From IMG/VR virus record IMGVR_UViG_3300007513_000001, positions 1-64,000 of that record: a stretch of DNA of 64,000 bases; one strand, written 5' to 3'. Positions 1,000 through 19,318 of the stretch are shown here, piece after piece. The position numbers were made by a program, and so were the translations under genes. Below the pieces are notes generated by a model. That model was not told the DNA's origin. It searched no databases and was given only the letters and a program-made list of their open reading frames with translations. Each line of letters starts with the position of its first letter. Position 1 is the first letter of the stretch.

Positions 1000-1343
1000 G
1001 TTCAGGTGGCGATTGCTATGAAGCAGCAGGCAAGTTCATAATGGAAGAATGTATGCTTGGGGGTGTGGATGACTGTCAATATATTCTTGTCCATGGTGAA
1101 GTTATGGGTCAAGGTCCCATCGCTGGAATACCGTTTGGACATGCTTGGGTGCTCGATGGTTCGACTGTCATTGACAGATCAAACGGAAGAGACATCTCAA
1201 TGCCAGCGCAGCTTTATTACGCGATCGGGCAGATTGATAGAATCGATAATGTTATTGAGTATCCGTGGGAAGAAGCCCGCACAAAGATATTGGATTACGG
1301 TCATTGGGGCCCGTGGGATCTTGAAACAGAAAGTGGATTATGA
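996..1343 (+). CDS. transglutaminase-like/papain-fold protein
   Basis: GDCYE...GHAWV...VID gives a Cys-His-Asp triad order. Confidence 0.5.
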   Translation: MSSGGDCYEAAGKFIMEECMLGGVDDCQYILVHGEVMGQGPIAGIPFGHAWVLDGSTVIDRSNGRDISMPAQLYYAIGQIDRIDNVIEYPWEEARTKILDYGHWGPWDLETESGL

Positions 1344-1954
1344 AAAAAAAGCCAGAAATCTTTACGCAATTCAACGCGCAGAACGTTCCTGTAAGCGCTG
1401 ACATTCTTGATACGCTAGAACAAGAAGTCGTGAATGAGTCTGCTCTTCGTAAATACATAAGAGAATTATTGATTGAGAAAGACAATTCTGCCGGACCAGG
1501 TGAACGTTATATCTATCGCGGTATGAAGATTGACTTGGGCTCTGCAGGCCTGGCATCTCAAATTAGAAAAGTGGCGCAAAAGAAACCTGCAGGAATATCT
1601 GATCAAGAAGCCGGCCGTTTTATTATGGGGAAACTGCAAAACGAAGAGATTGGTGAGTCTTGGACTACAAGCATGGACGTTGCGGCCAGTTTTGCAGACG
1701 TTTGGGAAGCTACAAATCGAGGCAGCACTCTTCACGTGATGTTTACTGGTAAGATTCCAAATGAGTTTGGTTATGATCCCACAACAACAGGTGAAGAACC
1801 ACCGATGTTCGAAGATGAGAGTGAAGTCCGGATACCGAAAGGTGAAGAAATTTTCATTTCAAATGTTGCAGTTTTTATTGCCGATAAAAAAGGTGGCAAG
1901 AACTGGATGAAATTCAAACCTGTTGCTTTTAGTCTTGGGAGTGTGAAAGCATGA
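1340..1954 (+). CDS. putative R-S-E class ADP-ribosyltransferase with LRKYIRELLIE leader motif
   Basis: YIYRG, GESWTTS and EDESEV motifs in ART order. Confidence 0.65.
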   Translation: MKKKPEIFTQFNAQNVPVSADILDTLEQEVVNESALRKYIRELLIEKDNSAGPGERYIYRGMKIDLGSAGLASQIRKVAQKKPAGISDQEAGRFIMGKLQNEEIGESWTTSMDVAASFADVWEATNRGSTLHVMFTGKIPNEFGYDPTTTGEEPPMFEDESEVRIPKGEEIFISNVAVFIADKKGGKNWMKFKPVAFSLGSVKA

Positions 1955-2493
1955 ACCTGCTCCGTGAATACATAAGAGAGTTGTTATCAGAAAGGTCTAC
2001 ATTTATGAACAAGGGATCTTCTGATTGGTTCCGTGTTGAACTACCCGGTATTGGATATGCTGAAGGAAGCCAACATTTACGCTTCAAAGAGTGTCAATCA
2101 GACGTTGATGCTATCATGAAAACTCCTGAATATTTAGCTGCAGAAAAGAAGCATCAAGAAACAGCGAAGCCAAGCACTGATATCGTTCGTAACGAAGAAA
2201 CAGGCGAGTGGGAAGAAGTCGAAGTCGGACCAGCAGCGTTTAGGCCGAGATTTTATGATGTTGAGAACGCTTGGATCTCCAACCCAGAAAACAGAGGTAA
2301 GGGGCACGGCAAAGAAATCTACAAGGCTTTTATCAATCAAGCTGTTGAATACTCAAAGAGTTACGGCGGCGTTTTCGTTGGCGCTCATCGATGTGTAATG
2401 GGGTCTGGGTCGTCTGAAGATGCCCAGCGTGTTTGGAAATCATTAGGAAGAGAATACACATCTTCTGGCATGGTTATCTTTATAGGGTTATGA
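1951..2493 (+). CDS. GNAT acetyltransferase with MNLLREYIRELLSE leader
   Basis: ENRGKGHGKEIY acetyl-CoA motif; SEDAQRVWKSL. Confidence 0.6.
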   Translation: MNLLREYIRELLSERSTFMNKGSSDWFRVELPGIGYAEGSQHLRFKECQSDVDAIMKTPEYLAAEKKHQETAKPSTDIVRNEETGEWEEVEVGPAAFRPRFYDVENAWISNPENRGKGHGKEIYKAFINQAVEYSKSYGGVFVGAHRCVMGSGSSEDAQRVWKSLGREYTSSGMVIFIGL

Positions 2494-2494
2494 A

Positions 2495-3184
2495 ATGAAC
2501 CTACTCCGCGAATACATAAGAGAGCTTTTGGCAGAAGCAGCAAAGGGCTTATCTGAATTTGAAGAGCGTGGAATGCATATTGCCATAGAAGATTCGGGTG
2601 ATGCATTTGAGATAAAGCTATATGATTTCGATCCGACATACCGCGAGCCGGGGACACCTGACGTGGCAAGCCCAGCTCCCAGTTCTAATTTTCCAGATGG
2701 CGCTCTTGGCATAATTTCAGCTATGAAAGAAGCAAGTACAGACAATGGTCCGTGTTTGGACGGATTTACTATTACGTGGGTAAGTGCAGAAGGCGGCTGG
2801 GGTCCGCTACTTTACGATTTGGCAATGGAGCTAGCTACGTCCAAAGGCTCCGGCTTAACGCCAGATCGAGAAAGTGTTTCATATGAAGCCAACAGGGTAT
2901 GGGATTATTACCTTGCTAATCGCAGCGATGTTGAAATGGTCCAGATGGATGATTTATCGAACCGCCTTACGCCCGGCACAAAAGAAGATAACTGCGCGAT
3001 GACACTAGCATACGAAAGAGGACTTGAGGGCGGAACGTTTTGGGATGAAGACAATCAAGAGACCCCATGGGATCCGTATGGCAAAGACGTGCTGCAACGA
3101 AGTCCTCTCTCGAAGATGGGTGTATGGAAAGGCGCTTCTAATATTGGTGCCATCAAGGCCATGGATAGATGGACAGAAATATGA
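2495..3184 (+). CDS. GNAT-like protein with MNLLREYIRELLAE leader
   Basis: GWGPLLYDLAM...VSYEANRVWDYY parallels the neighbouring GNAT. Confidence 0.45.
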   Translation: MNLLREYIRELLAEAAKGLSEFEERGMHIAIEDSGDAFEIKLYDFDPTYREPGTPDVASPAPSSNFPDGALGIISAMKEASTDNGPCLDGFTITWVSAEGGWGPLLYDLAMELATSKGSGLTPDRESVSYEANRVWDYYLANRSDVEMVQMDDLSNRLTPGTKEDNCAMTLAYERGLEGGTFWDEDNQETPWDPYGKDVLQRSPLSKMGVWKGASNIGAIKAMDRWTEI

Positions 3185-3792
3185 ACCTGCTACGTGAATA
3201 CATAAGAGAGCTAATATCTGAAAAAAGATATGATCCGCCAATAGAACAGGATGTCGTCCATGGATTGAGCTTTGACGAGATGCGAGCTCATCTTTCCAGA
3301 CATTTTGGTAAAGCAAAGATAACCTTAACGAATTCTCCGCTCATGCTAGAACAATCTCACAACCCAGGTCAAGGTTTGAAGCCAGAAGGGATTTGGTATG
3401 CGTGCGGAACTGATTGGTTAGATTTTCTGCAGACAGAAATGGGAGGACCATCCGCTGAAGAATATCAGGTTTGGGCTCTCAAAATTGATATGTCGAAAGT
3501 CAAATCTTTAACAACTTCAAAAGAGATCTCACGATTCTCTTGGAAATATAGAAACACTGATGAATATTTGAAAAACCCTGTAGTTAAAATTGTAGATTGG
3601 TCACTTGCGTCTAAAGAATTTGCTGGCGTAGAGTTTTGCCCCTATCCGGTTGGCGGTATGGATATTTCTGTTAAAAATGTTTGGTACGCCGGTATCGATG
3701 TCCCCTCAGGCTGTGTTTGGAACCCTTCAGCTATTACTAACTCTACTTTAGTAGCTGAGCTTAAAGACGACGGTTGGGAGGTATACGTATGA
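3181..3792 (+). CDS. hypothetical protein with MNLLREYIRELISE leader
   Basis: Leader repeat; Trp-rich body (KPEGIWY, VDW, SGCVWN). Confidence 0.6.
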   Translation: MNLLREYIRELISEKRYDPPIEQDVVHGLSFDEMRAHLSRHFGKAKITLTNSPLMLEQSHNPGQGLKPEGIWYACGTDWLDFLQTEMGGPSAEEYQVWALKIDMSKVKSLTTSKEISRFSWKYRNTDEYLKNPVVKIVDWSLASKEFAGVEFCPYPVGGMDISVKNVWYAGIDVPSGCVWNPSAITNSTLVAELKDDGWEVYV

Positions 3793-4313
3793 AAATTTTA
3801 CGAGAATATATAAGAGAGCTATTGAGTGAAGGTGTTGAGTTTCGCGAAGTTGATTCCCCGCTGAAATACAGTCGCTCTTCAAACGTCAAACGAATTGCGT
3901 ATTGCGATTCTGGTGTGACCGAGCTTCCTGGTAAACATGACACGTATTTTGATGAGATTGAAAGGTGGCGAAAGCGTACGAGTAGAGGTAAACTACTCAA
4001 AAAGCCAAAGCTTGAAGAAATCATCCCAGGCGTTAGCGACGCATGTATTATTGGGTTTTTAGACTACCACGTTCAGGGCCAGACCATAGATGGGAAAAAT
4101 ACCATGTGGTATATCGATTACATGAAAACTCGCACCGACTCTCGGGGCGCTGGCGTTGCTAGCAAGTTGGTTGACAACTTTTATGAAACCGTTGTAAAGC
4201 CGGGTGATCATGTCCATTTTGGTAAAATGATGCATCCGGGAATTGGCCACCTTAAAGATAAGATGGTAAAAAAATACCCGGATGTCAAAACAATCGGAGC
4301 GGTAAATTACTAA
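3789..4313 (+). CDS. GNAT acetyltransferase with MKILREYIRELLSE leader
   Basis: YIDYMKTRTDSRGAGVASKLV motif. Confidence 0.6.
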   Translation: MKILREYIRELLSEGVEFREVDSPLKYSRSSNVKRIAYCDSGVTELPGKHDTYFDEIERWRKRTSRGKLLKKPKLEEIIPGVSDACIIGFLDYHVQGQTIDGKNTMWYIDYMKTRTDSRGAGVASKLVDNFYETVVKPGDHVHFGKMMHPGIGHLKDKMVKKYPDVKTIGAVNY

Positions 4314-5182
4314 TGAACTTAGATGAATATAAGCAGCTATGCGGTAAAACGCCGCTTATCAAAATTAGCGATAAGATCTATGGAAAGCTAGAGACTTATA
4401 ATCCAACAGGTTCAGTTAAAGATCGAATGATTTCGTACGTTGTTGATCAAGCTATTTGCGGAGGTTTAATAACTGACGAAACGATTCTTTGCGAAGCGAC
4501 TAGCGGGAACACTGGCATTGCATTAAGCTCAGTGGCTGCTAACCTCGGATTAGAGTGCCGTATTTTTATGCCCGGCAATATGTCTATAGAGAGAAAACAA
4601 ATGATGTCAGCTTTTGGAGCGACATTTGTTGACGCTCCTGCTGATGATTTTGAGCGAGCAATTGAGATGAGAGATGAATTCATGTCAAAAAATCCCAATG
4701 CTTGGTCGCCAATGCAGTTTAGTAATCCAGCAAATGTGGAGTGCCACAAGCAGACTACAGCTTTAGAAATACTCAAGCAAGTTAACAGCATTGGATTAAA
4801 GTGGTCGGTATTCGTTCATGGTTCGGGGACTGGAGGGACTATTGAAGGCGTACGTCAGTTTTGCGCTGAAAATTTACCACGCACTAAAATAGTGATGGCT
4901 GTGCCCGCTGAGTCGCCCCACGGAATACAGGGAATCGGAGACGGTCGAGATTTCCTCGCTGATCCAGATGTTATGGACGATGTAGTCGTTATAAAAACTC
5001 AAGATGCGATCGAAAGAGCAAAGAATTTTGCTGAAGAAACTGGTTTATTTGTGGGCATAAGTTCCGGCGCGAATATTCTAGCTTCAGAAAGATTTGCTGC
5101 AGATAATGAAATTGCTGGCATAATTATAACGATGCTTTGCGATCGCGGAGAAAGATATTTATCTGTGTATGGTGAAAAATGA
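4313..5182 (+). CDS. cysK: cysteine synthase (PLP-dependent, CysK/CysM family)
   Basis: GKTPL, KLETYNPTGSVKDR, EATSGNTGIAL, GSGTGGT, GISSGAN. Confidence 0.9.
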   Translation: MNLDEYKQLCGKTPLIKISDKIYGKLETYNPTGSVKDRMISYVVDQAICGGLITDETILCEATSGNTGIALSSVAANLGLECRIFMPGNMSIERKQMMSAFGATFVDAPADDFERAIEMRDEFMSKNPNAWSPMQFSNPANVECHKQTTALEILKQVNSIGLKWSVFVHGSGTGGTIEGVRQFCAENLPRTKIVMAVPAESPHGIQGIGDGRDFLADPDVMDDVVVIKTQDAIERAKNFAEETGLFVGISSGANILASERFAADNEIAGIIITMLCDRGERYLSVYGEK

Positions 5183-5541
5183 CGTTAGCGCTTTCAAGAC
5201 CAATCTTTATTGAAAACAGTAGGATCCCAGTGTGGCTTTCTCATTTTTCTCCTATTACTATAAACGCTATTACTCTCGGACCATTCGTTTTATCGAGGGG
5301 GAAAATATCCGAAATCACAAGAGCTCACGAGACTATACATTGGCAACAATACATTGACCTCGCGATTCTCGGATTCCCTATTTTATACTTTGCTTATTGG
5401 ATAGCTGGTTTAATTAAATATAGAGACGGCAATAAAGCGTATTATCAGATTCCTTTTGAGCAAGAAGCTTATAAAAACGAAGACAACCCCTATTATTTTA
5501 TTGCTAGAAAGAGATGGGCGTGGAGAAAATTAAAAATATGA
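5179..5541 (+). CDS. HExxH-motif hypothetical protein
   Basis: AITLGPF...AHETIHWQQ...IPFEQEAY. Confidence 0.5.
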   Translation: MTLALSRPIFIENSRIPVWLSHFSPITINAITLGPFVLSRGKISEITRAHETIHWQQYIDLAILGFPILYFAYWIAGLIKYRDGNKAYYQIPFEQEAYKNEDNPYYFIARKRWAWRKLKI

Positions 5542-5678
5542 AAAAGATAATAGAGAAGCTTAAGTGGCGAGGAATTACTTTTAAAGATATAGTTTATTCT
5601 GTTTTTTGTTTGGGTTTAATAATTGCAGTGACTGGCGTAATGGCTTATAGTTTGGTGTTTTCTCTAGCTTCTCAGTAA
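5538..5678 (+). CDS. small membrane peptide (46 aa)
   Basis: ATGA overlap with upstream gene; one hydrophobic stretch. Confidence 0.45.
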   Translation: MKKIIEKLKWRGITFKDIVYSVFCLGLIIAVTGVMAYSLVFSLASQ

Positions 5679-5783
5679 ATTTTATTCGCAAAAATGCTAA
5701 TTTAGCAACTTAGCTGTTGAATAACGTCTTCTTAATTTATACTTTATAATATAGGGCGAAAGCTTTTTTTATTGGTCGTTGAG

Positions 5784-6266
5784 ATGCGTATTAGAGTGGC
5801 TTTTTTTAAGGGCAAAGGTAATTTTTGGAACTGGGTAGTGAGGTGGTGGACTGAAAGTCCATATAGCCACGCTGAATTAGTTATGCCCAATGAAACCACT
5901 TGGATAAGCATTAGTCCATTTCTCGCTTCTAAAGTAGCAGCAAGAGAGAAAAAAGAGTGGGATGAAAATCAGTGGGATTTTATTGATTTTTTCATCTCTG
6001 AAAAAGAATATCATGAACTAGAAGACTTTTACGACGCTACGAAAGGCTTGAAATATGACTGGGTTGGAATGATAGGATCTCAGTTGATGCCTTTTAGCTG
6101 GAGAATTAAAAGCACTAAAAAATGGTATTGTAGTGAGTGGATAGCTCACGCTTTAAGAGCTGCAGATATTATTCCGTGGAAAAAGCTTAAAATATATGAG
6201 AAAAAAGATATCAGTCCAGGAACCCTTTACAGCTTAATCTCAAATTCTTTAGACAACAATTTATAA
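5784..6266 (+). CDS. permuted papain-like amidase (NlpC/P60, YiiX/YaeF-like)
   Basis: YSHAELV precedes KYDW and WYCSEWIA (His before Cys). Confidence 0.65.
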   Translation: MRIRVAFFKGKGNFWNWVVRWWTESPYSHAELVMPNETTWISISPFLASKVAAREKKEWDENQWDFIDFFISEKEYHELEDFYDATKGLKYDWVGMIGSQLMPFSWRIKSTKKWYCSEWIAHALRAADIIPWKKLKIYEKKDISPGTLYSLISNSLDNNL

Positions 6267-6314
6267 ATCTTCTTGCTTAGTAATATAATCTATTTAACGA
6301 TGGAGATTAACTAC

Positions 6315-7325
6315 ATGAAGAAGACGATTTCTTTTGAAGACGTTCTATTAACACCTCAATATTCTGATATTATGTCGAGGAAAGAAATAGATCTCAGTGT
6401 TGCTTTAACTAAAGAGATTAATTTAAAAATTCCAATTATTTCTTCTCCGATGGACACAGTCACAGAAGACCAAATGGCTGTAGCTATGTCGAATCGTGGT
6501 GGACTTGGTATCATTCACCGATATAATTCTCCAAAAGAACAGCGAAAAGTGGTGGAAGATTCTCTAAAGGAAAGTTTTTACGTGGCGGCAGCAGTAGGTG
6601 TTACTGGCGATTATCTTGAAAGAGCACGAATGCTAGTAAAATCGGGCGTGTCAGTTCTTTGTTTGGACATTGCGCATGGCCACCATGCACTAATGAGGCA
6701 TGCTTTAAAAGTATTAAGAAACACGTTTGGTCAAGATATTCACTTGATGGCTGGCAATGTTGCGACGCTAGATGGATTTAATGATCTTTCAGACTGGGGC
6801 GCAGATTCAATCCGTGTAGGAATAGGGGGCGGCTCGATTTGTTCTACAAGAATTCAGACGGGCCACGGAGTTCCAACACTTCAATCTATTATTGACTGTT
6901 CTTATTCTGATCGTAATGCTCTTCTTATTGCCGATGGCGGAATTAGAAACTCTGGAGATATTGTTAAAGCTCTTGCAGCCGGAGCTGACGCGGTAATGAT
7001 TGGATCTCTTTTGGCTGGTTCAAATGAATCCCCGGGAGAAATGTTCCATAAAAACGGAGAAAGGTATAAGGTTTATCGTGGCATGGCTAGTAAAGAAGCA
7101 CAAATCCAGTGGCGCGGCCATTTTGCTTCTGTTGAGGGTGTATCCTCAGCAGTTCCGTGTAGAGGAAGCGCAGAAGATGTGTTAAGAGAGCTTGAAACTG
7201 GAATCCGCTCTGGTCTATCTTACACTGGAGCAAAAAATATTTTAGAGCTTCAAAGCAAGTCTACGTTTATAGAGCAAACATCAGCTGGACAGCTGGAAAG
7301 CTCAACTCATATTAACAAGAATTAA
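6315..7325 (+). CDS. guaB: IMP dehydrogenase / GMP reductase family, no CBS domains
   Basis: [40 protein letters not shown]. Confidence 0.88.
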
Positions 7326-7335
7326 TTTTAGATTC

Positions 7336-7365
7336 TGTAAAAAAAGCACCCCAATGTGTTATAAT
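7336..7365 (+). promoter_or_regulatory. early-type promoter TGTAAA-N18-TATAAT
   Basis: Matches the 10-copy motif. Confidence 0.75.
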
Positions 7366-7386
7366 AAGACAGTAAAGGAAGGATTG

Positions 7387-7599
7387 ATGGAAACTCAACT
7401 TACAACTTCTGGATCTCAACTTAGCAAACTTACTCCATTTGAAGAAGCTGCTTTGAGAGCGTTTCATTTCGGGCTTGCGTTAGATAATTGCGTACAGCTT
7501 CAAGCTTATATCGACACTAGTGAAGCCAGCTCTTCGAAAGAATCAACTTGGCTAGACAAAGTGTACATTGCTGAAATTATGGATTCTGAATTTAATTAA
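7387..7599 (+). CDS. hypothetical protein
   Basis: GGAAGG RBS downstream of the promoter. Confidence 0.6.
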   Translation: METQLTTSGSQLSKLTPFEEAALRAFHFGLALDNCVQLQAYIDTSEASSSKESTWLDKVYIAEIMDSEFN

Positions 7600-7606
7600 A
7601 TTTTTT

Positions 7607-7692
7607 GGCTGAGTGGTGGAATCGGTATACACAGGAGACTTAAAATCTCCCGGCCACAGGCCTTGCGGGTTCGAGTCCCGCCTCAGCTACCA
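7607..7692 (+). tRNA. tRNA-Leu(TAA)
   Basis: Cloverleaf, GGAGA-CTTAAAA-TCTCC anticodon arm, long variable arm, GTTCGA, CCA. Confidence 0.95.
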
Positions 7693-8128
7693 TTTCTTGG
7701 ATCATCAAGAATATACTGCGTTGTAGAATATAGTGCGCAGTATTTTAAGTTAAGCTAAGTGAACGAGAGATGAATCCTCTTTAGTAACAACTCTATTACA
7801 ATCTTTGAAATTTTATATTGAGGCCTTGGATTTAGCGGTCCGAGGAGCCGGTGGGGATACCGGTCGTAGTGACCAAAAAACTGACGGTGAGCGACGCATT
7901 GGTGGTCGCAAGAAGTCCGCAGGGAATGAGAGGTATGTACACCAACTGCATACTTCGTACCGTACGACGGATCCCCACCCCCTCTACCTTTTATGTGGGA
8001 GACACAGGCCAGAGTAGATGGTGGGTAAGTCTTACGAGCAGTAAGCCATCTCGTGGTTGCGTAAGCGTGGTCGAAGTACTGACTTTACAGGCTGTGTCTA
8101 GATAGAGAAGCTGGGAACTCTATCATAC
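7693..8128 (+). ncRNA. putative large structured ncRNA between tRNAs
   Basis: Nested helices e.g. 7850-7858/7971-7979, 8000-8007/8092-8099, 8016-8021/8046-8051, 8101-8107/8118-8124. Confidence 0.6.
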
Positions 8129-8204
8129 GGGACCGTAGCTCAGTTGGCAGAGCACCGGCCTTTTAAGCCGAGAGTCGTGGGTTCGAGCCCCACCGGTCCC
8201 ACCA
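8129..8204 (+). tRNA. tRNA-Lys(TTT)
   Basis: Cloverleaf, CTTTTAA loop, GTTCGA, CCA. Confidence 0.93.
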
Positions 8205-8211
8205 TTTTTTT

Positions 8212-8287
8212 GCCGAGATAGCTCAGCTGGCAGAGCTTCTGATTTGTAATCAGATGGTCGCAGGTTCGACTCCTGTTCTCGGCTCCA
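8212..8287 (+). tRNA. tRNA-Thr(TGT)
   Basis: Cloverleaf, TCTGA-TTTGTAA-TCAGA, GTTCGA, CCA. Confidence 0.95.
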
Positions 8288-8317
8288 TTTAAATTTTATT
8301 CTCGTATATGTATTTTT

Positions 8318-8572
8318 ATGCAGTACGAGTTTTCTTATTACAAATGTCCACTTTGCAAAGGATCGATTAATTGGTCTTTGAATAGCTCGGTTCCGGGAGC
8401 TTCATCACAAGCGTGGTGTTCAAACAGTCTTACATCTTCTAGAGCTAATTGGGATCGAAAATTATCTAAAGTTTGTTTTTGGAAAGGTAAAGTAGAAAGA
8501 AAGAAAAATGGAGAAGTACGATTATTAGACGCTAGCGGCCGTCTTCTAAATCCAGTTTTGTACAAGAAATAA
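8318..8572 (+). CDS. small Cys-containing hypothetical protein
   Basis: CPLC plus two further Cys. Confidence 0.5.
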   Translation: MQYEFSYYKCPLCKGSINWSLNSSVPGASSQAWCSNSLTSSRANWDRKLSKVCFWKGKVERKKNGEVRLLDASGRLLNPVLYKK

Positions 8573-8592
8573 ATTTGAAATAAAATATAGAT

Positions 8593-9792
8593 ATGAAAAT
8601 TAAATCTATTATTTTAGGATTAGCTTTAGCAGGAAATGCATCAGCCCAAGAGCTTAGTTCTAGTGAAACATCTTATACCGGTGCGACTATTTTAGAGGGA
8701 GACTGGGATGTAACTTTCCAGGAAAGCGTTGCAATTGCTGACAGTGATGATACGTTTCCATATGCTTTCTTTGAAGGCAACACGCTCTATGTTGGTAATT
8801 CCGATATTTATGAGAATACAGTTGATGCCATCGTGGAGTTTTTCTGGTTCCAATCTTCGATTGATAGAGGTACAGATTTTTATGTTGCCGTCATCAAGAC
8901 ACGCGCCACTCCAGGACACGACTGTTACTATGCGCCCTGGGATTGGGCACGTGGAGCACAGTGCAAACTTTGGGCAGATGAGTGGTCAGATTGGGGTGAG
9001 TATCCGGTTCTAAGCGTCGAAGCTATGACTGACGTAGAGCGCGAGCAAGGCGCTTTTCGATGGGACTGGTCAGTACCATTTGAAAGTTATGGTATTGATG
9101 CTTATGGGCAAGTAACATTTCAAAGCATATATGGAATTGGTTCTACTTCTGAGGGTGCTGCCATGGCTCATGGCGAATACCAAATGAACGAAGATGGTGA
9201 AATGAAAGCCGAAGGAAGCGTGCAAGTAAAAGGATATCACTCCTCAGAATACAGTGTACAAACCCAATACGAAGTGACACTATATGAATGGGATGTTTTT
9301 GTAGACGGAAGAGCTGATTTGATGGCTTGGGATATGTATCTTAACCTTGGAGCTAGAGAAACGCAATCTGCTTATCACGAATATTTTTTAGCGGTGCAAG
9401 TAGAATCAGGCCAACCATTCACTATAGATCAATTTAACTTTATAAGTAATTTTGATACTGGTTGGTATGATCCATTTCGACACGAGCTTGGAATTTCATT
9501 AGAGGGGATGACAATTAGCCAGCCTTATTATGAGCCAGTGGCTGATACAGAAGATCCGGATTCTAATGAAGAAGATACGGGATCCTCCGCGGGATATCAA
9601 GACACCGGAGTAGAGCAAAACTCTGACAAAGATACGGCATCATCGTTTGAGTTCGGAGATAGCTCGCAAGAGCCGGGGAGCAAATCATCTAGTGGGTGTT
9701 CTTGTTCTACCAGCTCAACTAATAGAGCTGGTCTCTTATTTGGATTATTAGCTTTATTTTCTCGTAGAAAAGAAAATCATGTCGGGGCGTAG
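8593..9792 (+). CDS. secreted/surface protein with MYXO-CTERM-like C-terminal sorting signal
   Basis: Signal peptide; acidic linker; GCSCS...[13 protein letters not shown] tail. Confidence 0.7.
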
Positions 9793-9859
9793 CGCAGTCT
9801 GGCAGCGCATCTGCTTTGGGAGCAGAGGGTCGTAGGTTCGAATCCTGCCGCCCCGACCA
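9783..9859 (+). tRNA. tRNA-Pro(TGG)
   Basis: CGGGGCG/CGCCCCG acceptor, TCTGC-TTTGGGA-GCAGA, CCA. Confidence 0.95.
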
Positions 9860-9889
9860 CTTATAAAATTAAAGTTCGCAGCTATAACC

Positions 9890-10615
9890 ATGTTGATTTC
9901 TCCTAACCATAAATTTATCTTTTTTAAACCAATGAAATGCGCTGGTTCTTCAGTGGAGTTTGCGCTTTATCAGAATTGTGGTGAAGAAGCTTTGTGCACT
10001 GGTGGAATCGATGATGAAACAGACCGCGGCTTTGTTCAACGAAATAACGTTTTTTATGAAGGCGAAGAATTAAAATATAGATTTCATTCACACACCTGGC
10101 CAGCTTTATTTTATGAAAGAATTGCTGATCAGTCTATTTGGGAAGAATATAAGAAAATTACTATAGTAAGAAACCCATGGGACATGCTAGTGTCTTATTA
10201 TTGGCACTTTAGACATCAACGCGCAAACTGTAATCAATGGCTAGATATAAAAGAAGATGATTCTCCCGACCAGATAAAGTGGAAGTTCGAAAGTTTTTTG
10301 ACATTATTATCTAAAATGGACAGCATATTTCCAGGAGCAGTATACACTAATGATTCGCCAATAAATTACGCATCAACAATAAGCGAAGCCTTTATAGATG
10401 ATAATATAGATTTTTATTTATCGTTTGAAAACATTCAAGAAGACTATATCGAGCTTTGTGATAAACTCTCTATTCCAACTACAAAATTGCCACGATTCAA
10501 AACGCGATATAGAAAAATAGAGATGTCCTACAAAAACTATTACAACAAAACAACTCAAGAAGCAGTATACATGAGATTTCCTAAAACAATAGAAAAGTTC
10601 GGTTATAAGTTCTAA
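9890..10615 (+). CDS. sulfotransferase family 2 protein
   Basis: FIFFKPMKCAGSS and TIVRNPWDMLVSYY PAPS-binding motifs. Confidence 0.8.
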   Translation: MLISPNHKFIFFKPMKCAGSSVEFALYQNCGEEALCTGGIDDETDRGFVQRNNVFYEGEELKYRFHSHTWPALFYERIADQSIWEEYKKITIVRNPWDMLVSYYWHFRHQRANCNQWLDIKEDDSPDQIKWKFESFLTLLSKMDSIFPGAVYTNDSPINYASTISEAFIDDNIDFYLSFENIQEDYIELCDKLSIPTTKLPRFKTRYRKIEMSYKNYYNKTTQEAVYMRFPKTIEKFGYKF

Positions 10616-10631
10616 CGTTATACTTATTTTT

Positions 10632-10814
10632 GTGGAATCCATAGAAGAGTGTATAGAATTATCAATAGTTTCAATGTTGGCAGGAGCATTGTTTTCTCTT
10701 TTTTTTATGAAAAAATGTTTAGTGCCTGAAGATGTAAATTTGTTTTTATTACATGAGCAACTTTCTTATGAAGAATTAAATCTAGAAGATTTAAAATCAG
10801 AATCAGTTGATTAA
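10632..10814 (+). CDS. small membrane protein
   Basis: ORF with hydrophobic segment. Confidence 0.4.
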   Translation: MESIEECIELSIVSMLAGALFSLFFMKKCLVPEDVNLFLLHEQLSYEELNLEDLKSESVD

Positions 10815-10834
10815 ATTTAATCAATGGAGGCCAA

Positions 10835-11182
10835 ATGGGAGAATTAGTAGATTTAGAAGAATATCGTCTTAAAAAAGAAGCTGAAGAAAAAATTAAAACT
10901 GAAGAAGAAATTGAGCTCTTGCGCGAAGAACTCGAAGAAATAATGGCACGCCTCAGTCTTTCTCCGAATCTTGATTCTTGTCCAGTTTATCCAGAAGATT
11001 ATTACAGTTCAATATCTTCTGAAGGTTTTTACTTTTCTACAGTTTGGCCTCCGTATAGCGAATATCGAAAAGATATTCAAGATGAAGAAGATTTATACAG
11101 TCTTGCTTGGACGCCGGATATTCCTAAGTGGTGCATAGATTTGAAAATTTACGATGAGGAACACACCCCGCGTGAAGATTAA
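10835..11182 (+). CDS. hypothetical protein
   Basis: GGAGG RBS. Confidence 0.6.
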   Translation: MGELVDLEEYRLKKEAEEKIKTEEEIELLREELEEIMARLSLSPNLDSCPVYPEDYYSSISSEGFYFSTVWPPYSEYRKDIQDEEDLYSLAWTPDIPKWCIDLKIYDEEHTPRED

Positions 11183-11372
11183 ATTTATTAAACTCTAGTT
11201 TGGATTCGACCCACCTACTTTTTAAAAGAGAGAAAACAATGAAAAAAAATATATTCTTTCAGGCCGGAGGCCGTTCGACCCACCTGGTTTTTAATTTAAG
11301 CGATGTGATAGTCGTAAACCACGATGGTGGTTTCCTCCATCCCACGGCTCCGTCAACACAGGGGGCCCAGAT

Positions 11373-11711
11373 ATGACCCGTATTATACCGATAATAGTGG
11401 TATTATGTTCCATAGGTTGTGCCAAGCACCGAACAACTCAGGCCCTAGAGATGCATCCTTCCGCGTGGTGGCAGTCTACTGGATCGCCATGTACCGATGC
11501 GTTACAGATTAATACTGTCGCCGAGGGATGCAGCACAGTGAACACTTCAATAATCAATAACACGTGGCTCGAGCTTCGATGCGAAGACGAAATAGAGGGT
11601 CCATGGTCTCAATCATGGTGGCTCTTCACCCCCGCCGGAATCGAACCCCTGCCGGGGTATACGCCAGTATGCGTCGATCCGTCTGGAACGCTAAGTATTC
11701 GTGACCAATAA
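11373..11711 (+). CDS. putative lipoprotein
   Basis: Signal ending SIGC; Cys-rich mature part. Confidence 0.55.
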   Translation: MTRIIPIIVVLCSIGCAKHRTTQALEMHPSAWWQSTGSPCTDALQINTVAEGCSTVNTSIINNTWLELRCEDEIEGPWSQSWWLFTPAGIEPLPGYTPVCVDPSGTLSIRDQ

Positions 11712-11768
11712 TAATTTTTTTTAGAGATCTGTGACGGATCATGCGCTGGGTGCATATGTAATTAATGA

Positions 11769-11990
11769 GTGTACCCAATGCGCCCCTCTCTCCGTCCTCA
11801 TGTCTCGATTCCCCTGCTCCTCGCCAGTGCTGCGCTGGCGGGGTGCTTCGGAAAAAATCAACGCGTGGAAGATCCCGCCTCGCTCGTTCACGAGCGATAC
11901 AGCGTAGAATTCCTCGAAGATGATGAATTCGAATTAGACGACCTGCCAGAAGCAGGCGACACCGGAGCTGAGGGAGAGGACATCGAGTAG
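11769..11990 (+). CDS. putative small lipoprotein
   Basis: LAGC lipobox; acidic tail with DTG. Confidence 0.55.
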   Translation: MYPMRPSLRPHVSIPLLLASAALAGCFGKNQRVEDPASLVHERYSVEFLEDDEFELDDLPEAGDTGAEGEDIE

Positions 11991-11993
11991 ATT

Positions 11994-12629
11994 ATGCGCC
12001 AGTGCGTTCGCTGGATATGCATGTCCGCGATAGCGCTGCTATGCATGGCAAATGGACCGGTCCCTGCGCCCATGATTTACGACGCTGAAGATCTAGTGTC
12101 GATGCACCCAGATACTCAAGAGGCGATCCGGTTTCGTAGGCGGCCAATTTTATCTGCGTGGTGGGCCGAAACACCCGCGGTGCGGGTGTGCGCATCGAGT
12201 GGAGTCTCTGAAGCCAGGATGAATCGCGCCCTGGATTATTGGCGCCGGCTTGGATATAATCTAGATCGAGTGTGGTACGACGATGGATCGGCGCTCTGCA
12301 CTGGACCAGGCGTGAGCGGCGAAATTACGATTGCGATCGTCAACTCGGACGTGCCGGTTGGGAACAACCTGGCCGTGACGCAGAATTTCCACAACCGGCA
12401 TACGCATGAGATGATTCGAGCAAGAATCTGGGTCTTTCCTGCGACTGTCGGAAAAGAATTACTGCTTGAGCACGAGCTGGGGCATGCCCTGGGGTGGGCC
12501 CACTATAACAGGTACTTACACGTTATGAATGCCGACTATGCTGAGATTGGACACGACTCCACCGGGCTTCGGTCAAGAGAGTACCAGGCTGAAAAACAGC
12601 GGATTCAAGAGAGTATACGCAAGGATTAA
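11994..12629 (+). CDS. matrixin-like zinc metalloprotease (metzincin)
   Basis: HELGHALGWAH plus Met-turn VMN; signal peptide. Confidence 0.8.
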   Translation: MRQCVRWICMSAIALLCMANGPVPAPMIYDAEDLVSMHPDTQEAIRFRRRPILSAWWAETPAVRVCASSGVSEARMNRALDYWRRLGYNLDRVWYDDGSALCTGPGVSGEITIAIVNSDVPVGNNLAVTQNFHNRHTHEMIRARIWVFPATVGKELLLEHELGHALGWAHYNRYLHVMNADYAEIGHDSTGLRSREYQAEKQRIQESIRKD

Positions 12630-12698
12630 CAGTGACTTGTAAAATTTATGTAACAAAAAAACGTAACAGAGTTGCGCTCAAGCGCCAGTTGGGCCGAA

Positions 12699-12968
12699 AT
12701 GCACAAAATTAATCCTCCGGCCGAAGAATTTGCTACTGGAGATCTAGTGAGCTGGACGGGAGAATGTTACCTGATGTCTGGTCGACTATCTGGAGAGATG
12801 GGAGCCCATGAGCTGACACAAGTGACTTATAGAGAGACTCGTACTGGACTGGTTATTAATAGGGTCGGCGATCATATTGAAGTGATGCACGGTAAACGAT
12901 TTTATATCTTGCAGCTAATGCTTCCGATAGAAAAATTGGTAGTGTGGAAGGAGGAGATGTGGTCTTAG
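12699..12968 (+). CDS. SH3/KOW-like protein (MKVGDLV family)
   Basis: FATGDLVSW...LVVW. Confidence 0.5.
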   Translation: MHKINPPAEEFATGDLVSWTGECYLMSGRLSGEMGAHELTQVTYRETRTGLVINRVGDHIEVMHGKRFYILQLMLPIEKLVVWKEEMWS

Positions 12969-13405
12969 CAATGGGATTATTGATGGGGTGTTTTCAGAGC
13001 GCCGCACCAGAAGAGACGCTCCCTGGTTCGTGGAGCACTTGGGTAAATCAAGAGATTACAGGCTTGATCGATGTGAACACTCAGATCCACACGCAGCTCT
13101 GGCTTGAAGACGATGAAATTGTGGGTTGGCTCTATCATACCAAGGGAACGTGGGAGCTACAAGACCAATATATTACGCCTCCCTGTGACCCAGAGTGGGT
13201 TCACGGCACCTACCGTGAAGATACTTGGGGTTACCATATATCTTGCATGTACGTAGGTGATAAGTGTCTTTCTACTCGGGTGCACCCAGAGAGCGTAGAA
13301 GTAGACTTGGGAGATCTATCTTACGGAATGCTGGGCTGGATTAAGCTAGAAGATCGAATCGATCCTCCTGAAAATGGTAAAGAAGAATTCGAGTGCCAAA
13401 AATAA
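12944..13405 (+). CDS. putative lipoprotein
   Basis: LLMGC lipobox. Confidence 0.5.
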   Translation: MEGGDVVLAMGLLMGCFQSAAPEETLPGSWSTWVNQEITGLIDVNTQIHTQLWLEDDEIVGWLYHTKGTWELQDQYITPPCDPEWVHGTYREDTWGYHISCMYVGDKCLSTRVHPESVEVDLGDLSYGMLGWIKLEDRIDPPENGKEEFECQK

Positions 13406-13426
13406 CTTAAGTTTTTTGGTTCGTTC

Positions 13427-13456
13427 TGTAAAAAAAGGCCTCAGATTTGGTATAAT
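13427..13456 (+). promoter_or_regulatory. early-type promoter TGTAAA-N18-TATAAT
   Basis: Motif match, TGG extended -10. Confidence 0.8.
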
Positions 13457-13495
13457 ACTAATATAAGGAAGGAACCTCTCAATCCAGGAGAACAC

Positions 13496-14344
13496 ATGCC
13501 TCGCAAGTCAGCTAAACTTCGACTCTCTCAAGCTGAAGAGCTCTACAAGAGTTATAGCGATGAGGGAATGACCGAATCCAAAGGTGGTCGCTTCATTCGT
13601 GACATGATTGCTCGTCTCTCTCGAGGCCGTGGTCTCTCTAAGGGACAGCGAAACTGGCTTGATAGCCTCATCGAAGAAGGAGTCCCCCAGCCCAAGGGTG
13701 ACCAGGTGCTGCTCGCCAAAATCGACCAAGCGATTGAAACTCCGGGAATGGAGCGTCGACGCGACATCCTCTCCGATTTCCGTCGGAAGGTGTTCAATGG
13801 TTGGAATCTCTCTCCCAAGCAGACTCAGTGGCTCAGTTCGATGATTGCTGATGCTGAGACTCTCCGAATCGAAGGTCCATGGACTCCGAACGAAGAGCAG
13901 CTCCAAGACATGCGCGATATCGCCGCACTGTCTCGTGGATACAATTCGGTATACTGGTCTACGCATGGCGGCACTTGGCGAGCTGTGGAGAAGATTCGAG
14001 CTTACCTCGAGGTCCTGGATAAAGGAACCCTAGAAGCCCGGGTTGAATTGGCCCCCATTGCACTCGATGAGTGGTGCATCAACAAGGCGAAGAAGGCTAT
14101 GGCTGGCCGGATTCGCGAACTCCGCGAGAAGCCGTACGTTGTTATGGGCGACCTGGTCTGGACCCGGTATCGCGACCCAGGAGCGCTCTGGAATGAACCG
14201 TACCAGTGGTTCCGCGCTCCAGTCTGCGGAAGCCCTGAAATCTCTGAAAAGGGAGAGGTCGTCTATCCGGTGCTCAACCCAGTTCTCGGGCTCATTATGG
14301 TCACAAACCAACAGATTGCCAAGCGCAAGCCGAAAGGAGCATAA
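13496..14344 (+). CDS. hypothetical early protein with two LSxxQ helical modules
   Basis: GGAG RBS after promoter; GC-rich codons. Confidence 0.7.
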   Translation: MPRKSAKLRLSQAEELYKSYSDEGMTESKGGRFIRDMIARLSRGRGLSKGQRNWLDSLIEEGVPQPKGDQVLLAKIDQAIETPGMERRRDILSDFRRKVFNGWNLSPKQTQWLSSMIADAETLRIEGPWTPNEEQLQDMRDIAALSRGYNSVYWSTHGGTWRAVEKIRAYLEVLDKGTLEARVELAPIALDEWCINKAKKAMAGRIRELREKPYVVMGDLVWTRYRDPGALWNEPYQWFRAPVCGSPEISEKGEVVYPVLNPVLGLIMVTNQQIAKRKPKGA

Positions 14345-14584
14345 ATGAAAAGTGTAGCAGAAGTAGTAATGAACTACAAGATGATGGAGCGCTTCGGCGG
14401 CTCTATGCTTCGCGAAGTGAAGTGGCAATATGCTGAAATGGCCGAAGGGCGTGACGGCGGTTCACTTGGCTTTGTTCCGGATGACTGGCCAGGTGACAAC
14501 CAGCCAACTTGCCGAGAATACAACTACCCTGGTTATTCAGATAGCTTCTTTCAGGAAGTACGTGATCTCATGGGATGGAAATAA
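14345..14584 (+). CDS. hypothetical protein
   Basis: GGAG RBS. Confidence 0.6.
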   Translation: MKSVAEVVMNYKMMERFGGSMLREVKWQYAEMAEGRDGGSLGFVPDDWPGDNQPTCREYNYPGYSDSFFQEVRDLMGWK

Positions 14585-14585
14585 T

Positions 14586-14897
14586 ATGCGCCGCAAGAAA
14601 GTTAGGTCTGGAGAGAATATCTCTTTCATCGCTAAATATCTGTTTGATAATCCTGGCGCGAGGCAAGGGGAAATCCGGCAGGCGCTTTGCCAGCAAAACG
14701 GCGTAGAGTGGACTACCCCCACTGAAATGAGAGGGCAATATACAACATATTTTTGCAGTGGCTGGATTGGAGGTTCATCTTGGCCGCGTAATCCGTGCGG
14801 CAGATACTGGACTCGAATGATACGTCCGGACGGAAAGACGGGATACATGCTGACCATAGAGGGAATCTCAAAAGTTAACTTGGAGGAAACACAATGA
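14586..14897 (+). CDS. hypothetical protein
   Basis: ATG directly after upstream stop. Confidence 0.55.
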   Translation: MRRKKVRSGENISFIAKYLFDNPGARQGEIRQALCQQNGVEWTTPTEMRGQYTTYFCSGWIGGSSWPRNPCGRYWTRMIRPDGKTGYMLTIEGISKVNLEETQ

Positions 14898-15238
14898 ACA
14901 ACACACGAAATCTTATGGAGCAACTCCGTAACCACGACTGGTATTACGCGTATAGCGATGATCATCGAGTCTGGACACGCGGAGAACAAGAAAATAAACG
15001 CCTTCGAGCGCTACTGGCAGATTTTCAATGTCCTTACGAGATGAGTAAGCTGCGAATGGCAGTACACAACATGGTCGTTGAAGATTACGTAGAAGAAAAA
15101 CCAGGTCGGTGGTTTCGTCAAGGAAATAAGTATCCAAATATCGCCCCCACGAAACGCTCAGAGTTGATGCATCGAGCAGACCAAGTTCAAATCTTGGCTT
15201 GGATTGAAGCTCAAGATAGGAAGTGGAATAATGTTTGA
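14894..15238 (+). CDS. hypothetical phage protein
   Basis: GGAGG RBS; HDWYYAYSDD motif. Confidence 0.65.
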   Translation: MNNTRNLMEQLRNHDWYYAYSDDHRVWTRGEQENKRLRALLADFQCPYEMSKLRMAVHNMVVEDYVEEKPGRWFRQGNKYPNIAPTKRSELMHRADQVQILAWIEAQDRKWNNV

Positions 15239-15376
15239 TTTTTTAATTGAATTGCAACCGGGAGCTGCGGTAATAGCAGCTTTGGCTGGACTCTTTGTTG
15301 CTGGCCACGTTCTCAATTACTTGCTTGAAACTGCCTATTGGGCTTTTATTGACTGGAAAAACAAGGAGAAAAAATA

Positions 15377-15598
15377 ATGCAACCTGGTGAAGTGAAGATG
15401 TGGCTGGATCAAGGGCCAGCAGTACTGCTAGAAGAATGTGAAGTCGAAGACCCAATTTCTATTGTTGATGCTGCTCTAGATGACACTGTCCCAGTAACAG
15501 AAACTGGTTGGATTATTCATTTGCTAGCTACTGGAGAAATCTTGAGCGTACACGAAGGCACACTACATAACAACCTTGATGGAGACGTCGACGAGTAA
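15377..15598 (+). CDS. hypothetical protein, possibly SH3-like
   Basis: AGGAG RBS; MQPGEV start. Confidence 0.55.
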   Translation: MQPGEVKMWLDQGPAVLLEECEVEDPISIVDAALDDTVPVTETGWIIHLLATGEILSVHEGTLHNNLDGDVDE

Positions 15599-15610
15599 AG
15601 CAGCTTATAG

Positions 15611-15889
15611 TTGATCATTTGCAGTCTAAGTTGCTATTTATTAGCTGTGATGAAGCTAAAAGACGTTGCAGAAATAATCAGGTGTGATATTCCAGACTTG
15701 ACCGAAGGACCCTTCGACGTCGAGATAGAATCTGACGATGGCGGAAGTCATATCGTCGTTAGAATAGAAGATCACGAAGATGGTAAAAGAATCTTGAAAC
15801 ACTTAACTACAGAATATTCAGGGACCCGATCATTAGTCATGCTAGTACCAGAAGGCTGGATTCAAGTTCACAATAATTTCAATAAATAA
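15611..15889 (+). CDS. hypothetical protein
   Basis: ORF; start uncertain. Confidence 0.45.
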   Translation: MIICSLSCYLLAVMKLKDVAEIIRCDIPDLTEGPFDVEIESDDGGSHIVVRIEDHEDGKRILKHLTTEYSGTRSLVMLVPEGWIQVHNNFNK

Positions 15890-15900
15890 TTTGTCGATTC

Positions 15901-15930
15901 TGTAAAAAAAGCCTCTCTGTATGGTATAAT
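15901..15930 (+). promoter_or_regulatory. early-type promoter TGTAAA-N18-TATAAT
   Basis: Motif match. Confidence 0.8.
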
Positions 15931-15958
15931 AGTACTATAAACAAGGAAAGGAGATTCC

Positions 15959-16339
15959 ATGCGAAAGAACGATCTAGTCAAGCTCAACGTTGCAAAGTGT
16001 TTCACGATGAAGTACGGGGGCAAGCGAACTTTCCCGCTCACGAATGGATTTAACGACGAAGAAGGTACTGTCGAGGGTTTCTTCAAGCTGACTCAAGAAG
16101 ACCGGGCTCGACTCCGGGCATCGGGTCGATATGACGGAATCGACAGCGGCGGAGAGTCAAAGCTCGTCCCTAGCGAGGGGCTTGCTAAGCTGAAGAGAGA
16201 TTATGTTTACCAAGTCCTTCGAGCTCGGACCGCTGCGGTTCGCAACTACCGACGCGAGGGTGGTCTTGCCCTGGTTCTCTGCACCAACACTGGACGAAAC
16301 ATTTACATTAAACGCGAACTTTTGGAGGTTGTGAGCTAA
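15959..16339 (+). CDS. SH3-like protein with insertion (MKVGDLV family)
   Basis: MRKNDLVK...LLEVVS; AGGAG RBS. Confidence 0.6.
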   Translation: MRKNDLVKLNVAKCFTMKYGGKRTFPLTNGFNDEEGTVEGFFKLTQEDRARLRASGRYDGIDSGGESKLVPSEGLAKLKRDYVYQVLRARTAAVRNYRREGGLALVLCTNTGRNIYIKRELLEVVS

Positions 16340-16472
16340 TGTTGCACGATTGGCAAATTGCACTACTGGACCAGGGTCTGTGGCTTTTGCCGACCCTTGG
16401 CGTTCTCGCTCTGGCTGTCTTCCCTTGGAAGCACTGGAACTCTCTCTTTGACGAAATTTTTGAGGTGGCAGA

Positions 16473-16682
16473 ATGAAAGTCGGTGACTATATCTATGATT
16501 GGGCTCTCGGTAGAAATGGCGTCATAGTCGGTGGCCCATGGGTTGAGCCAGCGGGCTCAGACTCCGAAGCGGCTCATGATTCGCATCGCGACATTGCGTG
16601 GGAATGGGCTATTCTCCAAGATGGTGGCGAGATCCTTGGCGCTGATACAAAAGATTTGAAGGTGATTGATGAATGTAGGTGA
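16473..16682 (+). CDS. SH3/KOW-like miniprotein (MKVGDLV family)
   Basis: MKVGDYIY...LKVIDECR. Confidence 0.65.
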   Translation: MKVGDYIYDWALGRNGVIVGGPWVEPAGSDSEAAHDSHRDIAWEWAILQDGGEILGADTKDLKVIDECR

Positions 16683-16866
16683 TGCAGTTAGGTTGAAACG
16701 TACCAACGAGGTTGGTATCGTTGTCAAAAAATACCGTAAGTCTATTCCTGACGGTAACCCTAATGGTGATTTCACGCTTGAATATCGTTGGAATGTACTT
16801 TTTGGTACTGAAACAAGAACGATTAACAATCGCTGGATGTGCGAGGTAGTTAGTGAAAGTCGGTGA
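16669..16866 (+). CDS. SH3/KOW-like miniprotein (MKVGDLV family)
   Basis: MNVGDAVR...EVVSESR; 14-nt overlap. Confidence 0.65.
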   Translation: MNVGDAVRLKRTNEVGIVVKKYRKSIPDGNPNGDFTLEYRWNVLFGTETRTINNRWMCEVVSESR

Positions 16867-17113
16867 CTTCATCGAAGTTTATCATCATCTTCCTCGTTAT
16901 GAAGCGGGAAATATTCCGCTTGGTCCGATGGGAAAAGGAATAGTGGTAGATGTAAAGAAGGACGAACCGCCGAGTCCCGTCTTCGATACGATCACTGCTG
17001 TTTCATATCTTACGACTAACGGCGAATTAAAGACAGACTGGATTAATAAAGAATACGGCGGAATTGTTGTGACTGTTAAGATTCTGCAAGAGGCAATTGA
17101 TGATTCTATCTAG
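16853..17113 (+). CDS. SH3/KOW-like miniprotein (MKVGDLV family)
   Basis: GTG start, MKVGDFIE; 14-nt overlap. Confidence 0.65.
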   Translation: MKVGDFIEVYHHLPRYEAGNIPLGPMGKGIVVDVKKDEPPSPVFDTITAVSYLTTNGELKTDWINKEYGGIVVTVKILQEAIDDSI

Positions 17114-18079: not shown

Positions 18080-18127
18080 AATACAATCTTAATATCAAGA
18101 TTATGATTTTAATATAGGGAGATTTAA

Positions 18128-18322: not shown

Positions 18323-18331
18323 GAGATTATT

Positions 18332-18508: not shown

Positions 18509-18510
18509 TT

Positions 18511-19315: not shown

Positions 19316-19318
19316 TTC

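Follow-up and report, generated by a model that had tools for sequence, protein, structure and literature searches.

Proteins with a MYXO-CTERM sorting signal (TIGR03901) combine an N-terminal signal peptide with a C-terminal cysteine, usually in a Gly-Cys pair, a helix and an Arg/Lys tail. In M. xanthus, TraA is cleaved by the myxosortase MrtX in a manner that depends on the cysteines, is probably lipidated and is displayed at the cell surface through type II secretion (PMC11980579; 10.1101/2023.06.07.544157). Here we describe a protein of the same layout, the 399-residue product (P0001) of an open reading frame (ORF) in the first 64 kb of the 293,409-bp phage record IMGVR_UViG_3300007513_000001 from IMG/VR; this 64-kb stretch, the whole of the DNA analysed at the outset, is referred to as the window. 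As in the known MYXO-CTERM systems, the genomes holding its cellular homologues each encode a single myxosortase core alongside several MYXO-CTERM proteins. It differs from those systems in being phage-encoded, in a genome that lacks a myxosortase, and in being the single such protein there. The titles and abstracts of the papers found to name both MYXO-CTERM and phage describe no phage-encoded case.

The second point of comparison is the alpha-hemolysin/leukocidin class of toxins (PF07968), among them Hla, LukF/LukS-PV and gamma-hemolysin of S. aureus, delta-toxin and NetB/NetF of C. perfringens, CytK of B. cereus and the V. cholerae cytolysin, with which the phage protein shares its predicted fold. 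In contrast to these toxins it has no detectable sequence similarity to the class, it contains a Trp-rich loop with two cysteines, it would be held by a C-terminal tether rather than released, and it comes from Gram-negative Myxococcota and a phage; its pore formation is putative. The hairpin of alpha-hemolysin has about 40 residues, whereas that of the phage protein is longer, at about 66. To our knowledge, the joining of this fold to a surface anchor is not known for the alpha-hemolysin toxin class. Panton-Valentine leukocidin (PVL; lukS-PV/lukF-PV of phiSLT, NC_002661) is similar in being phage cargo of the same structural toxin class and dispensable for virion assembly. PVL is, however, released, has two components and is encoded beside the lysis module and the attachment site in a temperate phage of 43 kb that infects a Gram-positive pathogen; the marine phage, by contrast, has 293 kb and encodes a single protein with an anchor, of which a host orthologue exists.

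On balance we favour the view, which we regard as reasonably probable, that P0001 is a host-derived surface protein made in the infected cell by a jumbo myovirus-like phage of low guanine-plus-cytosine (GC) marine Myxococcota. A reading made earlier from the sequence alone had described a signal peptide, a Trp/Tyr-rich domain, an acidic linker with DTG motifs and an anchoring tail, and all four were confirmed on one intact ORF on the plus strand (Table 1). The domain (residues 19-312) contains 12 Trp and 21 Tyr, giving a Trp plus Tyr content of 11.2% against 4.9% in the phage proteome. The linker (residues 313-364) is rich in Asp and Glu (29%) and in Ser, Thr and Gly (35%), and is modelled with a predicted local distance difference test (pLDDT) score below 50. 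At E<=0.001 we found 551 homologues, on contigs of up to 302 kb and some of them from Tara Oceans. The best 120 of these 551, which come from marine metagenomes and are 68-87% identical, all have an N-terminal signal, although in 9 of the 120 it is lipobox-like instead (for example LLTGCPV; P0016, P0056, P0064, P0066, P0071, P0093, P0100 and others), and these homologues might carry lipid anchors at both ends.

The tail (residues 365-399) consists of G368-C369-S-C371, a polar Ser/Thr spacer, a helix that includes LLFGLLALF, and then RRK. Even at E<=10, the protein matches nothing in NCBIfam but TIGR03901 and three myxosortase-dependent families, the latter at their C-terminal ends. JDVT-CTERM, Synerg-CTERM and CGP-CTERM signals were considered, and none of these models matched at the same threshold. 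The TIGR03901 score depends on how much of the protein is submitted: residues 330-399 gave 22.3 bits and a six-frame genome scan 22.4 bits, above the curated cut-off of 20, whereas the full-length protein gave 17.7 bits. Hence the hit to the MYXO-CTERM model passes the cut-off for the tail, but not for the whole protein. Since the tail has a low-GC composition, being Ser/Thr-rich and ending in RRK rather than RRRR, a score at the threshold is to be expected, and since a low-GC Myxococcota orthologue also scores 22.3 bits, the marginal value appears normal for that lineage. The six-frame scan of the whole phage returned this one match only, 0 of 14 control genomes exceeded the cut-off, and just 1 of the 379 ORFs in the 293-kb genome has such a tail.

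The tail is also well conserved among the homologues, which argues that it matters. Among the best 120 of the 551, all 120 have a cysteine within the last 50 residues, 105 have the Gly-Cys pair and all 120 have the tripartite Cys/helix/basic layout (recognised in 116 with a regular expression and in the other 4 by inspection). C369 never varies in 38 sequences with identities as low as 31%, and conservation reaches at least 90% at G368 and R391. Collectively, these features imply that the phage tail is very probably a MYXO-CTERM signal, as the sequence-only reading had proposed, its only NCBIfam matches being linked to myxosortases and no rival Cys-containing sorting signal being matched. No CPBP protease (PF02517) or myxosortase core (NF040914) was matched in the 293-kb phage genome. 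Any processing of the tail must therefore be carried out by the host, and the proposed use of host anchoring machinery was borne out to the extent that the phage would depend on a host enzyme. A myxosortase encoded in the same genome, as in cellular systems, is absent here because the genome is that of a phage.

The fold of the head was modelled with AlphaFold2 from a 38-sequence alignment (mean pLDDT 66.6; sandwich core above 90, residues 167-222 below 50). A Foldseek search of the PDB with this model returned only members of the alpha-hemolysin/leukocidin family among the top 40 matches (E values from 6e-5 to 1.6e-3, probabilities mostly 0.9-1.0), including delta-toxin, NetF, LukAB, LukE, PVL, alpha-hemolysin and the V. 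cholerae cytolysin. The structural alignments cover 170-190 residues across the whole toxin chain, and so match the full alpha-hemolysin architecture beyond the sandwich; the predicted structure has both the cap beta-sandwich and the rim. The AlphaFold DB clusters gave mostly unnamed proteins and one S. aureus leukocidin-like entry, all with template modelling (TM) scores below 0.4; the fold search of the ESM Atlas likewise gave only TM-scores below 0.4, and its feature search was uninformative. The phage protein was unmatched in PHROGs and in a tblastn search of 50,697 phage records. As sequence methods detect nothing, we regard the protein as belonging to an unannotated family that is related to leukocidins by fold only, and the head is not filed under PF07968 because it does not pass that family's sequence test. 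Judged on its predicted structure, the head domain is an alpha-hemolysin/leukocidin pore-forming-toxin fold.

Two segments of the head are candidates for membrane contact. Period-2 amphipathicity persists longest at residues 164-229 of the protein, and the two faces of strand B, the second strand, have mean Kyte-Doolittle values of +1.21 and -2.57, one face reading GMAGVVGHSYVTYV and the other DEKESQKYSESQQE. This amphipathic hairpin is conserved from the phage proteins to cellular homologues down to 31% identity, the loop of the cellular proteins being rich in Gly, Ala and Asn. From the order of strands we infer that the hairpin sits at the position of the toxin stem. The Trp-rich loop (residues 107-139), which contains the only two cysteines of the domain, is a possible rim-like membrane-contact loop with a disulfide.

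The phage genome itself is complete, with direct terminal repeats at the ends of the record, a completeness rating of 100% and a GC content of 39.4%, and it encodes tailed-phage hallmarks (a T4-type large terminase, a portal protein, a baseplate wedge protein and a helicase). Relatives of the gene outside phages were found by a profile-free scan of 1.8 billion representative proteins, which gave distant full-length relatives of 30-45% identity, mostly with classical MYXO-CTERM tails; one of them is named a MYXO-CTERM protein by the Joint Genome Institute (JGI). For two of these relatives the source contigs proved to be cellular, with 65-72% GC and neighbouring genes for EF-Tu, threonine synthase, Ser/Thr kinases and MglA/MglB-like proteins, and one high-GC carrier genome of 8.2 Mb has a myxosortase core (127 bits). 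We then searched 401 genomes of the phylum of that carrier and 151 genomes of the order holding the nearest homologue, and found homologues in 26 and 32 of them, respectively. The best cellular homologues are 49-56% identical to the phage protein (30-56% for cellular-context homologues overall) and come from genomes of 3.6-5.5 Mb in which the loci have 41-49% GC.

These low-GC loci are cellular and syntenic, with genes for RecJ, an SMC-like ATPase, a SprA-related protein and choice-of-anchor-D proteins. In two of the metagenome-assembled genomes (MAGs) concerned, both low-GC Myxococcota, a conserved block (L063:8353-13269, L064:21-5021) contains the SprA-related protein, the hemolysin-like protein, a 329-338-residue protein that NCBI describes as a PAS-domain protein, and a choice-of-anchor-D/HYDIN-like protein with immunoglobulin (Ig) domains; on one low-GC contig the neighbouring proteins are labelled 'Myxococcota bacterium' by NCBI. 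Of the homologues extracted from the phylum genomes, 23 of 23 have the cysteine and 22 of 23 the full Cys/helix/Arg tail. Six of six homologue-bearing genomes scanned for it have a single myxosortase core over the cut-off (111-127 bits), and the five nearest genomes have 4-31 MYXO-CTERM matches each together with exactly one core. High-GC Myxococcota also contain longer paralogues (450-1282 residues; P0135, P0136, P0146-P0164 and P0183) that share the N-terminal domain, continue with Cys-rich or MopE-like metal-binding modules, cadherin-like or Ig domains, and mostly end in MYXO-CTERM.

A maximum likelihood tree (LG+C20 with posterior mean site frequencies, PMSF) places the 26 phage sequences in one clade (100/97) that is nested among the cellular sequences. 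This clade is sister to the pair G260/P0124 (100/95) and then to G390 (98/92), both of low GC. Thus, in the taxonomy of its homologues, the phage gene nests among Myxococcota genes, and this nesting together with the bona fide phage genome qualifies it as host-derived phage cargo. The gene was probably acquired in a single capture from a low-GC marine Myxococcota lineage, as judged by the tree.

Further, independent evidence on the host comes from the transfer-messenger RNA (tmRNA) of the phage. Al-Shayeb et al. 2020 reportedly used the tmRNA genes of huge phages as host indicators, and here too a jumbo phage has its own tmRNA with a tag resembling that of the inferred host lineage. The phage tag is ANNNYHFEADRLAA, which starts with ANNNYHF, while the tags of the low-GC MAGs are ANNNAHFAVAA or ANNNKHFALAA. 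An ANNNxHF tag is present in 22 of 33 genomes of the order of the nearest homologues, and in none of the 30 genomes sampled from each of the two phyla to which the Latescibacterota- and Gemmatimonadetes-labelled MAGs considered below belong. The phage tag has its first seven positions in common with the consensus of the host order, whereas its end is longer and different; two genomes of the order carry the tag ANNNNHFAARMAA, which resembles the longer phage tag. Shine-Dalgarno sites lie upstream of 45% of the phage ORFs against a background of 9%, and the 39% GC of the phage is near that of the low-GC MAG loci; both fit a low-GC Myxococcota host, as weaker evidence. A Bacteroidota or cyanobacterial host was considered from terminase similarity and GC content. 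Frequent use of Shine-Dalgarno sites speaks against a Bacteroidota host, and both candidates were set aside on this ground, on that of the tmRNA tag and because the host would have to possess a myxosortase. A nucleotide search of window positions 1-20000 against the five nearest MAGs gave only tRNA matches (tRNA-Pro, 87-89%), patches within the gene itself (66-79%) and a short GMP-reductase patch, which are too unspecific to bear on the host. We conclude that the host is likely to be a low-GC (41-49%) marine Myxococcota lineage. The myxobacterial-type host suggested at first is supported by the nesting of the gene, the myxosortase-bearing nearest genomes and the ANNNxHF tag, but it would belong to a low-GC marine lineage and not to the classical high-GC myxobacteria.

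Several observations weigh against this account of the tail, the fold and the host. The full-length TIGR03901 score lies just below the cut-off, and this model detects only 8 of the 38 members of the family at E<=0.01. For the head, the similarity rests on predicted structures and the Foldseek TM-scores against the PDB are just 0.2-0.38; Pfam gave no match at E<=10 for the phage protein and none at E<=0.1 for 46 relatives, the PDB sequence profile search returned only noise (E>=0.5), and hhalign against LukF-PV and LukS-PV from phiSLT gave a probability below 1%. The hairpin region is poorly modelled, with low pLDDT in model 1 and only partly as strand in model 2. As for the host, no Cas1 was found in the five nearest low-GC MAGs, so that no CRISPR link (clustered regularly interspaced short palindromic repeats) could be drawn, and no phage-like copy of the gene (above 56% identity) was found in the Myxococcota samples of 401 and 151 genomes; no direct phage-host link was found. 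Part of the support for grouping the phage with its sister sequences could stem from their common low GC, and the closest terminases from cultured phages are those of Flavobacterium and Microcystis phages (41% identity). Finally, a scan of the genome collection gave only two relatives, on short contigs in a Latescibacterota and a Gemmatimonadetes MAG (Table 1). These are probably phage contigs that were wrongly binned, since both MAGs lack a myxosortase core above the cut-off and belong to phyla with other tmRNA tags.

Taking these points together, we propose the following model. The protein would be exported by the Sec pathway, its signal peptide being removed after residue 18, as read from the sequence. 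By analogy with TraA and MrtX (PMC11980579), the C-terminal helix would retain it in the inner membrane with RRK on the cytoplasmic side, and the host myxosortase, an intramembrane protease of the CPBP family, would recognise G-C-S-C and remove the tail; the cysteine would probably be lipidated and the type II secretion system would carry the protein to the surface. There, the acidic linker of about 50 residues would tether a head with the predicted alpha-hemolysin/leukocidin fold, which presents an aromatic-rich surface and the 66-residue amphipathic hairpin at the putative stem position. The head would most likely bind a membrane, assemble into a ring and insert a beta-barrel, and so act as a tethered, contact-dependent pore-former. 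Tethering would suit dilute seawater, since a free toxin would be lost there.

The model suggests that infected cells display a membrane-attacking protein. In the role that we prefer, the phage would maintain or boost a membrane-attacking function of its predatory host that acts in trans on neighbours, whether prey, competitors or grazers, and would gain nutrients for the replication of its 293-kb genome. A fuller version, that cosmopolitan marine jumbo phages of uncultured low-GC Myxococcota arm cells with a myxosortase-processed, tethered pore-forming toxin, the virocell killing neighbours on contact and harvesting their contents, is put forward tentatively. Under that version the gene would serve as an auxiliary gene that boosts predation, and its product would be the first member of the alpha-hemolysin structural class to carry an anchor.

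The barrel could also act in cis, inserted in the outer membrane of the producing cell either as an MspA-like nutrient porin or as an aid to disruption at the time of lysis. We think this unlikely, as the toxin family beats MspA by 3-4 Z units, the gene has tRNAs and metabolic genes (GMP reductase, a pyridoxal phosphate (PLP)-dependent enzyme and a sulfotransferase) as neighbours, and the cellular genomes hold it as an ordinary single chromosomal copy; no lysis genes were identified nearby, in an analysis without a search aimed at them.

The sequence-only reading had raised receptor masking or superinfection exclusion as a possibility; a protein that forms no pore would then coat or replace a host surface structure, possibly the orthologue of the host if this is the phage receptor, and block later phages. 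This appears more doubtful still. The structural match extends over the full alpha-hemolysin architecture (170-190 residues) rather than a mere sandwich, and masking leaves unexplained an amphipathic hairpin of 66 residues that is conserved down to 31% identity. An alpha-hemolysin-type fold indicates membrane insertion rather than masking, and a surface-tethered membrane-inserting protein fits the predicted anatomy better. That the tail is a generic C-terminal membrane anchor in a non-myxobacterial host, its MYXO-CTERM likeness left over from an old gene transfer and with no myxosortase processing, would accommodate the marginal full-length hidden Markov model (HMM) score, the binning of phage-like contigs with Latescibacterota and Gemmatimonadetes, the terminases nearest to Flavobacterium and cyanobacterial phages and a 39% GC far from that of classical myxobacteria, but is highly improbable given that a plain anchor has no need of the near-universal Gly-Cys and Cys (105 and 120 of the best 120 of 551), that 22.3 bits is the score of both the phage tail and the low-GC Myxococcota orthologue, that both MAGs lack a myxosortase core over the cut-off and their phyla an ANNNxHF tag (0 of 60), and that frequent Shine-Dalgarno use argues against a Bacteroidota host.

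Marine jumbo phages of this type are common, as seen from the 551 homologues of one gene, and their hosts are mostly unassigned. Low-GC marine Myxococcota emerge as a concrete host candidate from a sorting signal that depends on an enzyme restricted to one lineage and from the matching tmRNA tag, and the gene may therefore be of practical value as a host marker for this widespread group. If the model holds, the myxosortase pathway extends to viruses, and a phage exploits a host-specific route of surface anchoring. The family, present in both Myxococcota and phages and without a Pfam model, joins a predicted alpha-hemolysin fold to a surface anchor, and could plausibly serve predatory bacteria to kill on contact in dilute seawater.

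Table 1. Features of the P0001 gene and protein, and of other loci mentioned in the text (window positions unless stated otherwise).
Feature	Position	Strand	Remarks
Complete ORF P0001, 399 aa	8593..9792	+	ATG start, TAG stop; intact
Sec signal peptide, residues 1-18	8593..8646	+	Read from sequence: MKIK, hydrophobic core, predicted cleavage ASA|Q (AxA site)
Alpha-hemolysin/leukocidin-fold domain, residues 19-312 (294 aa)	8647..9528	+	Trp/Tyr-rich; predicted structure
Trp-rich loop, residues 107-139	8911..9009	+	Only two Cys of the domain: C111, C124
Candidate pore-forming stem, residues 164-229	9082..9279	+	66-residue amphipathic beta-hairpin
Acidic disordered linker, residues 313-364 (52 aa)	9529..9684	+	Two DTG motifs
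MYXO-CTERM-type sorting signal, residues 365-393	9685..9771	+	TIGR03901 match 9691-9768
tRNA-Leu (TAA)	7607-7692	+	Upstream tRNA cluster, 7607..8287
tRNA-Lys (TTT)	8129-8204	+	Upstream tRNA cluster
tRNA-Thr (TGT)	8212-8287	+	Upstream tRNA cluster
tRNA-Pro (TGG)	9783..9859	+	First 10 bases shared with 3' end of ORF
Second tRNA cluster (Met, Asn, Gly, Arg)	L031:10609-15563; genome ~274.6-279.6 kb
Phage tmRNA	Genome 72354-72761 (L021:8354-8761), outside the window		ARAGORN; Rfam RF00023, 107 bits
74-75% identical gene copies	DUCW01000115.1 (L003); JAYYVF010000042.1 (L004)		MAGs labelled Gemmatimonadetes and Candidatus Latescibacterota

The surroundings of the gene are marked by tRNAs. The phage has eight tRNA genes in two clusters, Leu/Lys/Thr/Pro around the gene (window 7607-9859) and Met/Asn/Gly/Arg near the other end of the genome. 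The TAG stop and the last three sense codons of the ORF lie inside tRNA-Pro (9783-9792), and the closest homologues end in NGA or NGV, which suggests that the overlap is conserved among them. If the ORF and tRNA-Pro are co-transcribed, maturation of the tRNA at its 5' end would strip the mRNA of its stop codon, a curious possibility given that the phage has its own tmRNA. In related phages tRNAs adjoin the gene too, with a tRNA-Gly directly upstream of the homologue in diverged relatives (L019, L020), and a diverged 280-kb relative keeps the gene in a different gene neighbourhood. A scan for promoters and terminators around the gene gave nothing beyond the shuffled expectation.

The metabolic neighbours (window 4313-7325 and 9890-10615) encode a PLP-dependent enzyme (PALP), a GMP reductase/IMPDH-family protein and a sulfotransferase, and a Nol-like carbamoyltransferase is found further along the phage genome (L023:2621-4258). 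At window 11769-12629, where the GC content is 50% compared with 39% for the genome, a 73-residue ORF with a lipoprotein-type signal (LAGC) and an acidic DTG-containing stretch is followed, one stop codon later and in the same frame, by a 211-residue ORF with an HExxH matrixin-like motif (Pfam E 0.0025); the pair may represent separate genes or a single gene that has been interrupted. A second high-GC island (about 51%) lies at window 42615-45831, where a MoxR-like AAA_5 ATPase adjoins a DUF2201 metallopeptidase/VWA-like protein.

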